DNA of 64,000 nucleotides from Epithemia pelagica (taxonomy: Eukaryota; Protista; Bacillariophyta). Where the stretch lies: NCBI GenBank assembly GCA_946965045.2, contig OX337228.1, positions 2,852,001 through 2,916,000 on the forward strand, written 5' to 3'. Position 1 is the stretch's first letter. The number at the start of each line of letters is the position of its first letter. A program made the translations under genes and the position numbers. This document shows, one piece after another, positions 31,028 to 35,000 of the stretch. The notes under the pieces were generated by a model. It worked only from the letters and a program-made list of their open reading frames with translations, had not been told where the DNA came from and did no database searches.

Positions 31028-31361
31028 CTCGAGCCCGACCCCCTCCAAAAAAAATCCTTACGTCTGTCCGTGGCTCCATACATGACCGTTGAGTCGGGTC
31101 AAAACCCTATCCCTGTAAACGACTGCCATACTCTGCACTCTGCGGTCTCAAGTCTGTGAAGATCGCCTCTTGCGGTCATTCTCTCGTTCCAACAGAGGTA
31201 CCTCGCACTACCTCGCAATACCTCGCACCTATTGTAAAGGTCTGGATCTGTTTGATTCTCGTGAATCAAAGGCAACAAAACTGCCAACAACATCTCTTGT
31301 TTGGGACCTGTTTCTGCTTTGGCGCTTCTAAAAGGCTGCCTTCTTTTCTTCAACAATGAGC

Positions 31362-32130
31362 ATGAATATCTTCCGCCTCGCGGGAGACATGTCGCATGTC
31401 TTCAGTATCATCGTGCTTTTGTTGCGACTTCGTGTTGCCAAGAATGCGCAAGGTACGCTCCTGACCTCCCGGGAATACTAGCGCAACGCATCGATAATTT
31501 AACTCTTTTCTTCTTTCGTTTTTGTTTCTGCGGAAATGTCCAGGTATCTCGGTCAGGACGCATGAGCTTTATCTCTTAGTTTTCGCTACCCGTTACCTCG
31601 ACTTGTTCACCAGTTTCTATTCCATCTACAACTCAGTCATGAAGGTGCTATTTATTGCCAGTACGACGTCCATCATATACACGATCCGATTTAAGGAGCC
31701 AATCAAATCCACGTATGAAAAAGGCCAGGACACCTTCTTACACTGGAAGTTTGCGGTATTACCTTGTGCCATTGTGGCCGTTATCACCCATTTGCTTGGA
31801 TCAGGAATTGCAAAGTTCGACCTCCTGGAGTTGCTGTGGACTTTCTCAATCTACCTGGAATCAATTAGCATTTTGCCACAATTAATTGTTCTACAACGGT
31901 ACCGTGAGGTCGAAAACTTGACAGGGAATTATGTTTTCTTTATGGGTGCCTACCGAGCCTTGTACATTGTGAATTGGATTTACAGGGCAAATACGGAAAA
32001 GGGATACAAACATCACTGGGTGGTGTACTTTTGCGGTGTTTTGCAAACGCTCTTGTATGCGGATTTCTTCTACTACTACGTAAAAGCCAAGTCCAAGGGC
32101 AGCAAGCTGACACTTCCAACTGCGTCGTAA
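31362..32130 (+). CDS. ERD2: ER lumen protein-retaining (KDEL/HDEL) receptor, 2 exons (intron 31453-31543)
   Basis: MNIFRLAGDMSH...AQ|GISVRTHELY..VFATRYLDLF, WTFSIYLES..ILPQL, YRALYI.NW, QT.LYADFFYYY. Confidence 0.97.
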
Positions 32131-32512: not shown

Positions 32513-33232
32513 CTAACGGCGGGATGCCTTCCCCATCCGTTTCTCTTGACTCTTTCGCATGGCTGACTTCTGTTTCCTTGTCATCACAGTGATCGCCTCC
32601 CGTTGTACTATCAACTGAGTATTCTCAACAGTCATCGGTAGTGCTTTACCTTCAAGCTTGCGTTTCCGTAGAACACGTTGCATTAAGGAGATTGTATCGA
32701 ACTGCTGAAGAAAAAGGTTCAAGTCTTCGATCGATACCTCAGCTTTGTTTATTGCCTTAAGTTTCTCGAGTTTGCTCATGTCCTCAAGGTCTTGAGCTGT
32801 GCATTCCGCTCCTTTTGCTGCAATGAGTCCTTGGACTGCACTGTACATCTTTCTTGCTAATTGTAACTCGCCGTTGGAACCCATACCAGGAATCTTGGCC
32901 TTCCAACTCTTAACGGTGTTCTCCAACTCCTTCGACATATCATCAAGAGTCCAGGAGTCTGTAGCTGCCATGGCCTCCACGCGTTTCTCATAGTCTTTTT
33001 GCGCTTGTCTTTCCTGAGAATTCTTCCACCAATCAACCGGATTTATATTGAAAGAGCTTGCAGCTGGGGACGAAGAACCGAACTGTCTGATTGACCCATA
33101 AGTGCTTCTGTTGTTCTTCAAAATATCAGATGACTTTGTAATGGGGACTTCTAGTCTTTGAACAGCATGTGCTACTCGCCCCCATCCTCTACTGTGATAG
33201 TATGATTTGAATATAAAAACCCGACTGCTCAT
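32513..33232 (-). CDS. Hypothetical protein with a mitochondrial-type presequence and an Ffh/SRP54 M-domain-like region
   Basis: N-terminus is R/S-rich and nearly free of acidic residues; WTLDD...KIPGMG...IEDLNLFLQQFD..LM. The ORF opens at 33298. Confidence 0.6.
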   Translation of the reverse strand: MSSRVFIFKSYYHSRGWGRVAHAVQRLEVPITKSSDILKNNRSTYGSIRQFGSSSPAASSFNINPVDWWKNSQERQAQKDYEKRVEAMAATDSWTLDDMSKELENTVKSWKAKIPGMGSNGELQLARKMYSAVQGLIAAKGAECTAQDLEDMSKLEKLKAINKAEVSIEDLNLFLQQFDTISLMQRVLRKRKLEGKALPMTVENTQLIVQREAITVMTRKQKSAMRKSQEKRMGKASRR

Positions 33233-33365
33233 GGTCGATCTCGTTCTATCGAAAAGATTGGATGGCGGCGGATAAAGGGACATGAGACATGACATCAATG
33301 TCGCGCAGGGCGGTGCAGATAGTTTGTCGCTCTAAGGTCGCGTAAAACTGACGCACAAAAAAGAG

Positions 33366-35000
33366 ATGTGCCACGCGGCATGCCATCATCTGCCAGATTG
33401 TTCAAACAATCAACAGAATCACAAGACAGGTACAAATCACGTTTCGATGCAACCAAAGAGAGATTCGAGTGTGATGAATGCCAATAAACAACAAATCAAG
33501 CTCCTGTTCTATTCCACCCTTCTCTTTCGTTTGCGTGTGGTATGCGCATTTGTAAATCAAATTGCCAAAGTTCAATTTCAACATGTAGGGCAGTCCGTAT
33601 CTGCCAAAACATTTCTTCATTCTAAACTCTATTCTCAAGTCTTCGTCGTTGATAGTGGTGACAACGACGACGACGATGATGATTATGACGACGACGAAGA
33701 GGATGAAGATGAAGATGATCGAGATCCATATCTCGATGCAGCCTCTTCTGAATTTCTTGACGATCCTAGTGAAAGGCAAAGTGCCACCAGCAGCATTGTG
33801 CCTTCTGATCCTGGTCTTTCGTCCCCGACGACGGGGGTTGACTGGGGAGGCGCACTGGGCCGATTACGGGAAAGGGTAGAGGATTTTGAATCAGGCGATT
33901 CGAAAAATCCTTCGAAAGCGCTCTTTCGATTAATGTCGAGCGAGTCACCGAACCAAGCAATTGGTTCGTTCATTTCGAGGGCGAATCCACAGGTAATCGA
34001 AGCAATGTCCAGTGCTGTTAGCAGTCTTCTGGGAGGATTGGCAAATCCTCAGATTGGTGTTCAAATGATAGTGAAAGCTTCCGGTGAAAAAATCGGATCA
34101 TTGTGCTTCCAACTCCAAATGACCGGGTACATGTTCCGTAACGCGGAGTATGTCATGGCGTTGAAGAAAATAATGGACATATCGAGTTCTGCCACCCTGG
34201 ATGATTATAAGGAAGCTTTTGACAGACTGGATCGAGACGGATCTGGATATATTGAAGCTAGTGAAGTACGACAACTGTTGGATCAAGTATACAAGGGTGA
34301 GACGCCATCTTTTGAAATCAATGCTTTTGTCAAGTTTTTCGATAAGGACGATGATGGACGAGTCTCATGGGAAGAATTCAAACTCGGACTGGGGACTGCC
34401 ATGGCCCAGCAGGCACAAGAAAAGTTGAAACTACGAAAGATGCTTTCGCCCTCTACTGATACTTTGTTCCAGAGAAAAACGGAAGATGAAGAGGACGAAT
34501 TTCCGGATATCGAGACTTCTGTCTCAGGGACATTGGAAGTTGAAATGGAAGACGGAACGACTGTGGAAGTTGATGCCGCAGATTACTTGCAAAATCTCAA
34601 AGAAGAGGCAAGGACGCTCAAAGAGGCGTTGCGCAAAGAGAAGTTAGGAAATGCAGGTGCTTCAGGCCAGCTTGCTGAGTTGCTATCTGGGGCACCCGAG
34701 GGCCCCACAGAGGACGACACATTTGGTGGCATCGCTAGCTACATTGCTTCGCGACAGGGTGATATCAAGTCATTAACAGAAGGTATCAGCCCTGAGATCG
34801 TGGATGCGATGAAGATGTTGGTGGACTTCGTACTTGAAGGGGGAGCCAGCAAGAAGGGTAGCTCGATGCCCAAAAAAGAAGAAATGTCGATGGAAATCCC
34901 AGCATCAGCGTTGCAACAGCTAGCTCTTTGGCAACTCATTCTTGGATATCAACTACGAGAGGTTGAAGCAAAGGGAGATTACATCAGGCTCCTCGAGTAA
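33366..35000 (+). CDS. Probable plastid protein with tandem DUF760-like domains flanking an EF-hand pair
   Basis: Signal peptide ending VCA-F; QLQMTGYMFRNAEY and WQLILGYQLRE DUF760-like ends; EF loops DRDGSGYIEASE and DKDDDGRVSWEE. The real start may be a downstream ATG. Confidence 0.8.
   Translation: MCHAACHHLPDCSNNQQNHKTGTNHVSMQPKRDSSVMNANKQQIKLLFYSTLLFRLRVVCAFVNQIAKVQFQHVGQSVSAKTFLHSKLYSQVFVVDSGDNDDDDDDYDDDEEDEDEDDRDPYLDAASSEFLDDPSERQSATSSIVPSDPGLSSPTTGVDWGGALGRLRERVEDFESGDSKNPSKALFRLMSSESPNQAIGSFISRANPQVIEAMSSAVSSLLGGLANPQIGVQMIVKASGEKIGSLCFQLQMTGYMFRNAEYVMALKKIMDISSSATLDDYKEAFDRLDRDGSGYIEASEVRQLLDQVYKGETPSFEINAFVKFFDKDDDGRVSWEEFKLGLGTAMAQQAQEKLKLRKMLSPSTDTLFQRKTEDEEDEFPDIETSVSGTLEVEMEDGTTVEVDAADYLQNLKEEARTLKEALRKEKLGNAGASGQLAELLSGAPEGPTEDDTFGGIASYIASRQGDIKSLTEGISPEIVDAMKMLVDFVLEGGASKKGSSMPKKEEMSMEIPASALQQLALWQLILGYQLREVEAKGDYIRLLE

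Follow-up and report, generated by a model that had tools for sequence, protein, structure and literature searches.

An intact minus-strand reading frame of 239 codons (32513..33232) lies near the middle of the window, by which we mean the whole 64,000-nucleotide stretch of Epithemia pelagica DNA that was analysed. The question it raises is what kind of protein resembles the M domain of Ffh/SRP54, has no other domain of that protein, and begins with something like a mitochondrial presequence. An earlier reading, made from the letters alone and here called the sequence-only reading, had suggested a stand-alone, RNA-independent vestige of Ffh that would act on the ribosome or on nascent chains in stramenopile mitochondria. 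That suggestion is supported, and it is in essence the view that the literature takes of the MAP67/mL105 family. Our answer is that the reading frame very probably codes for the diatom MAP67/mL105 ortholog. This mitochondrial protein, encoded in the nucleus, would have arisen from a mitochondrial Ffh that lost its N and G domains.

The coding sequence runs from the ATG at 33232 to a stop codon at 32513-32515, and is complete and intron-free according to the list of open reading frames, the sequence itself and a contig of run X5. This contig has a 91-nt GT..AG intron removed in the neighbouring gene and thus derives from RNA (cDNA), yet it crosses the whole reading frame unspliced and continues to 33244; since it is gapless through the frame, the gene has no intron. 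Its end lies 12 nt upstream of the ATG and marks a short 5' leader (33233..33244, minus strand) up to the apparent upstream limit of the transcript. Two more in-frame ATGs, at about 33295 and 33283 (some 22 and 18 codons upstream), follow an in-frame stop. As the contig stops short of both, 33232 is favoured as the start, being the first ATG of the transcript, which is suggestive evidence given that contigs cannot prove where a transcript ends. The depth of run X5 is zero in the bin 33265-33395, and coverage is back at 33430 in the divergent neighbour. A metatranscriptome, X1, holds a 259-nt contig over 32510-32768 with three differences.

Both neighbouring genes are unrelated to MAP67/mL105. 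A gene for a KDEL/ER-lumen-protein-retaining receptor (31300-32130, plus strand; PF00810, E 2.5e-52), whose intron (31451-31541) is the one joined in the X5 contig, converges on the 3' end of the mL105 gene, and because a single RNA-derived contig covers the two, their 3' ends are about 380 nt apart at most, or overlap. On the other side, a divergent plus-strand reading frame of 544 aa (33366-35000) has a long Asp/Glu-rich tract ahead of two DUF760 stretches (PF05542, E 1.2e-30) and an EF-hand pair (PF13499, E 2.3e-12). Its true start is probably downstream of 33366, since the RNA-derived coverage begins at 33430. The GAT/GAC-rich acidic tract at 33658-33788 is hit by many unrelated contigs from all four runs, and the depth spike with loose ends found there is a low-complexity artefact and not a feature of the locus. 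Between the mL105 gene and the DUF760/EF-hand gene, about 185 nt (33245-33429) have no coverage in run X5 and are probably a short bidirectional promoter region.

Searches with the single protein reach its relatives with some difficulty. A word-indexed protein search returned the query itself only, the family being too divergent for shared 5-mers, and an NCBIfam scan of the protein alone gave chance matches only (E > 0.02). With phmmer against PDB sequences the top match was 6z1p_AT, at a modest E of 0.0017 (query residues 70-220); this chain, mL105 of the mitoribosome of Tetrahymena, carries the name 'Signal peptide-binding domain protein'. The M domain of E. coli Ffh (5aka_5) was matched weakly by the same search, at E 0.3. 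A synthetic PPR-DYW entry in the PDB, matched at E 0.007, was rejected: the match consisted of several sub-threshold stretches of 30 residues on a repeat protein, and it was gone in the profile search. An exhaustive HMMER search over 1.84 billion representatives yielded 148 others at E <= 1e-3, 98 of them at E <= 1e-10, with matches spanning query residues from about 50 to 239. Nearly all are stand-alone proteins of 70-315 aa, the two exceptions having 399 and 600 aa, and this, together with the mere 239 aa of the diatom protein, agrees with the earlier statement that an NG GTPase domain is absent. Named relatives include a hypothetical protein from the diatom Epithemia, and XP_002181531.1 of Phaeodactylum tricornutum, which has 240 aa and shares 43% identity without gaps over residues 65-239 (E 8e-50). 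The latter has the automatic UniRef name 'Signal recognition particle SRP54 subunit M-domain domain-containing protein', and it is a clear ortholog from a model diatom.

The evidence becomes much stronger when the family is taken together. Alignment A1, with 83 of the 148 relatives, was the basis of a family profile and of the AlphaFold2 model. The profile matches 6z1p_AT with an E of 5.2e-21 over profile positions 32-241, near its full length, and the next PDB matches are solely M domains of Ffh/SRP54 (E 1.7e-5 to 2.7e-4). None of the mL105 chains of Polytomella, Chlamydomonas and Toxoplasma was found by the sequence profile, even at E <= 10; the structure search alone found them. The sequence-only reading had proposed a search with the Pfam model SRP_SPB (PF02978), and the outcome is divided: the protein itself matches no Pfam family at E <= 10, SRP_SPB, SRP54 and SRP54_N included, but ten of the 83 aligned relatives do match SRP_SPB, the best with an E of 2.1e-10. 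Homology to PF02978 is thus supported through these intermediates and through the fold. The nearest clusters in the ESM-Atlas are diatom proteins described as 'SRP54 subunit M-domain containing', oomycete and ciliate proteins with PF02978, and plant and chlorophyte proteins with SEC-C; this range is the published spectrum of MAP67 and supports membership of the family.

The AlphaFold2 model (mean pLDDT 83, pTM 0.70) has an all-helical body with helices at residues 65-90, 96-108, 121-140, 154-164, 168-194, 202-216 and 219-238. In a structural search against 48,161 representative chains the best match was a chain of the large subunit of the Toxoplasma mitoribosome (9i05_AI, Z 13.2, 161 residues aligned over model residues 72-239), followed by mL105 of Tetrahymena (6z1p_AT, Z 11.4, 80-239) and another chain of the Toxoplasma large subunit (9g6k_Le, Z 11.2, 5-238). 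The M domain of archaeal SRP54 from M. jannaschii with a bound signal sequence came next (4xco_D, Z 9.2, 86-191), ahead of chains from the mitoribosomal large subunit of Chlamydomonas (7pkt_S, Z 8.0, 84-231), Ffh of Thermus (T. aquaticus; 2ffh_A, Z 7.8, 93-190), the Polytomella mitoribosome (8a22_Ub, Z 7.5, 81-194), the SRP of Bacillus (4ue4_C, Z 7.2, 95-189), mammalian SRP54 (2j37_W, Z 5.8, 95-190) and an archaeal M domain (2jqe, Z 5.4, 93-197). From the descriptions of those ribosomes in their papers we infer that 9i05_AI, 9g6k_Le, 7pkt_S and 8a22_Ub are mL105/mL119. Helical folds may give middling Z scores by chance, and unrelated folds appear from a Z of about 5, but all of the ten top matches are mitoribosome chains or M domains of SRP54/Ffh, and thus belong to one family. 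Foldseek returned the identical order with weaker statistics. Structure prediction, which had been named earlier as a check, therefore came out in favour of the M-domain likeness, and sequence profile and fold together show that the protein belongs to the MAP67/mL105 family.

The anatomy of the protein can be read against Ffh. The M-domain-like helical core, defined by the profile and the structural matches, comprises residues 94-194 (32651..32953, minus strand). The stretch that had been aligned by eye starts within it, with WTLDDMSKEL from residue 94 (nt 32953), and ends with ISLMQR at residue 186 (about nt 32675); phmmer puts it in the same register (KLPGMG / VQDVNRLLKQFD), and the profile values given above confirm that the likeness is real. 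Ahead of the core is a long conserved helix in residues 65-93 (32954..33040, minus strand; helix 65-90 in the model, pLDDT 77-98), which aligns with Tetrahymena mL105 from residue 124 of that protein and with the Toxoplasma chain 9i05_AI from model residue 72. The counterpart of the finger-loop start of Ffh, according to the alignment to the E. coli protein, lies at residues 110-121 (W-KAKIPGMGSNG; 32870..32905, minus strand), where KLPGMG in Ffh corresponds to KIPGMG in the diatom protein and the local pLDDT falls to 74. Its residues are well kept among the 83 members: W110 in 76, K113 in 64, P115 in 59 and G116 in 55. Further on, the Ffh helix VQDVNRLLKQF corresponds to SIEDLNLFLQQF in the diatom protein.

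The part that binds SRP RNA in Ffh has changed much more. The HMMER alignment to Ffh places the counterpart of its helix-turn-helix at residues 141-165 (32738..32812, minus strand), and both halves of the motif are degenerate, just as the sequence-only reading had it: AKGAECT stands for SMT..ER and LEKLKAINKA for RKRRIAAGSG. Across the family the GSG columns hold A/K/E, A/G/S and E/D/G. The diatom protein would accordingly bind no SRP RNA. The 239 residues contain neither an N domain nor a G domain of the SRP type (GTPase), and what lies upstream is the in-frame stop and the divergent neighbour gene.

Behind the core there is a basic C-terminal extension, residues 195-239 (32516..32650, minus strand), which is evident from the conservation, the model and the alignments and consists of a G-K-x-L-P motif and two helices. 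P199 is invariant in all 83 aligned members, and G195, R189 and R191 are each found in 73 of them; residues 201-239 hold 11 R+K against 3 D+E. The extension aligns to 6z1p_AT through chain residue 286 and to 9i05_AI through residue 488. Since the structural matches to Ffh/SRP54 stop at about residues 190-197, whereas those to the mitoribosomal chains run on to the C-terminus, the final 45 residues represent an addition specific to the family. They probably correspond to the anchor by which mL105 reaches into the exit tunnel, a role that we take over from the Tetrahymena protein (PMC7326499).

The N-terminal extension, residues 1-64 (33041..33232, minus strand), differs from all this in composition, predicted structure and conservation, and is a probable mitochondrial presequence with a linker. 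Among its residues 9 are basic, 2 are acidic and 15 are Ser or Thr. The description of the N-terminus as rich in R and S and nearly free of acidic residues was accurate: residues 1-60 have 9 R+K, 13 S and 2 D+E, and the first 25 residues are without any acidic one. In the model residues 1-60 have no secondary structure (pLDDT 43-57), and the extension cannot be aligned with that of the Phaeodactylum ortholog. The amphipathic moment is moderate, with a maximum of 0.58 around residues 15-32. Among the relatives, 78 have an extension that starts with M and has a median length of 71 aa. Basic residues make up 12% of this extension, Ser/Thr 24% and acidic residues 3.8%, while the core is 13.6% acidic. 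This is the trend of the diatom protein too. Import into diatom plastids takes a bipartite route that needs a hydrophobic signal peptide. Nothing like such a stretch is found at the N-terminus of this protein, and the highest 15-residue Kyte-Doolittle window (0.77) is at residue 132. The composition of the N-terminus fits a mitochondrial presequence, argues against the signal-peptide route to the plastid, and suggests a mitochondrial location.

Much is already known about the family. [quoted passage not shown] The MAP67 family was defined by Pyrih et al. (2021, PMC8321541) as mitochondrial, Ffh-related and with the M domain only, and they equated it with mL105 and obtained an HHpred value of 99.66% against PF02978. 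It occurs in most major eukaryote lineages, the exceptions being Metazoa, Fungi, Discoba and Metamonada, and is too divergent from the M domains of Ffh for a meaningful tree (PMC8321541). Their Table S7 lists stramenopile members from Blastocystis, Phytophthora and Ectocarpus, all predicted to be mitochondrial, and no diatom by name (PMC8321541). The same study reports full-length mitochondrial Ffh and FtsY from a few protists, as had been stated in the sequence-only reading (PMC8321541). In Polytomella, according to Tobiasson et al. (2022, PMC9576764), mL105 sits at the tunnel exit, where it touches a density ascribed to the Oxa1 insertase and overlaps with the place taken by mL45 in mammals. 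The tunnel-exit protein of Chlamydomonas was first named mL119 and is seen in situ at a membrane contact (PMC8660880), and the mL105 of Toxoplasma has an 'anchoring helix' inside the tunnel (PMC11742926). We came across no report of a biochemical test of what mL105 does, in any organism.

With this background the work of the diatom protein can be sketched as follows. The basic, acid-poor N-terminal residues, about 60 in number, would direct import into the mitochondrial matrix, as their composition suggests here and as TargetP predictions and proteomics indicate for other family members (PMC8321541). The mature form, about 175 residues long, would then sit at the exit of the polypeptide tunnel on the mitoribosomal large subunit, where the M domain of Ffh sits on bacterial ribosomes, and its basic C-terminal helices would be anchored into the tunnel. 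Such a position is known from cryo-EM of Tetrahymena, Toxoplasma and Polytomella/Chlamydomonas, and the conservation of sequence and fold suggests it for the diatom; ribosome association would thus be extrapolated from alveolates and green algae. The M-domain-like core may touch the emerging nascent chain, the Oxa1 insertase, or both, and could in this way couple the translation of hydrophobic, mitochondrially encoded proteins to their insertion into the membrane, with no need for SRP RNA, a GTPase cycle or FtsY. It would then be a functional equivalent of mammalian mL45 and yeast Mba1, a role that has been proposed in the literature. A bolder version, which we find unlikely, is that the diatom protein may have kept a working hydrophobic groove and be a protein-only, one-domain SRP. 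As a true selector of nascent chains, and not a passive tether for Oxa1, it might discriminate, among the mRNAs of the mitochondrial genome, between those for membrane proteins and those for soluble ribosomal proteins. The conservation of the finger-loop start and of the core helices would be in keeping with this.

A rival idea is that of a soluble, mobile chaperone of the matrix, a minimal SRP that binds signal peptides and cycles on and off the ribosomes and is not a constitutive mitoribosomal protein. Several observations would suit it: the M-domain core is conserved throughout the family, including W110, K113, P115 and G116 of the finger-loop start, the mature part is fairly rich in methionine (10 Met in 171 residues), and Pyrih et al. 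proposed that MAP67 binds N-termini that resemble signal peptides (PMC8321541). The structures that show permanent binding come, moreover, from lineages other than diatoms. Still, the protein is stably bound in purified mitoribosomes wherever a lineage has a structure, and the part that is best conserved is the C-terminal anchor, with P199, R189, R191 and G195 kept at the frequencies given above. In view of this strongly conserved anchor we consider a mobile chaperone quite improbable in diatoms.

Could the reading frame instead be a fragment or pseudogene of a plastid (cpSRP54/ptFfh) or cytosolic SRP54, or an M-domain protein that is targeted to the plastid? Genes for ptFfh and cytosolic SRP54 do exist in diatoms, as tree labels in a published supplement show (PMC8321541), and the M-domain similarity is there. 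A decaying fragment is nevertheless hard to reconcile with an intact frame within an RNA-derived contig and with its conservation in other diatoms, where the protein likewise stands alone and is equally long, and the profile match to mL105 is sixteen orders of magnitude above that to any Ffh/SRP54; the N-terminus, moreover, has no hydrophobic signal peptide for entry into the plastid. The chances of such an origin appear to us very small. We give just as little credence to a fortuitous likeness of some unrelated small helical protein. The profile matches, at 5e-21 to mL105 and around 1e-5 to several independent Ffh entries, the ten top structural matches from one family and the ten relatives that match PF02978 directly all speak against it, even though the protein itself has no Pfam match and helical proteins often reach a middling structural Z. 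A diatom MAP67/mL105 is the reading that we retain.

The protein is, then, an ordinary ortholog. The literature already covers its family, where that family came from, in which lineages it occurs (stramenopiles among them) and where it sits on the ribosome. The gene adds one more member to a family whose description dates from 2020-2021 and whose proteins have been seen on mitoribosomes of three lineages, the ciliates, apicomplexans and green algae. What is gained is a sound annotation as mL105/MAP67, with 239 aa, a start at 33232 and no intron. The reasoning from the letters alone proved to be sound, although it did not recognise that the family had been described before. Diatoms are genetically tractable, and the gene could help to test the function of mL105.

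Compared with the known systems, the diatom protein has nothing that differs in kind from MAP67/mL105. Like these it is a stand-alone, M-domain-like protein in the range of about 200-300 aa with a presequence-like N-terminus and without N and G domains, and like these it combines a degenerate RNA-binding motif with conserved basic C-terminal helices, at about 20% identity to the ciliate protein. The SEC-C or SecA-like additions at the C-terminus of MAP67 in Chloroplastida and Centrohelida are absent here, as they are in other stramenopile members. With the M domain of bacterial Ffh/SRP54 it shares the helical fold over residues 86-191 or so (Z 9.2 to 7.2), the KxPGxG of the finger-loop start and a V-x-D/E-V/I-N-x-L-L-x-Q-F helix. 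It departs from Ffh in having no N and G domains, in the loss of the residues that bind SRP RNA, in the extra N-terminal helix and in the C-terminal anchor, and it presumably works without SRP RNA and FtsY. To mL45 of mammals and Mba1 of yeast the likeness is one of proposed function, as a link at the tunnel exit to the Oxa1 insertase. [quoted passage not shown]
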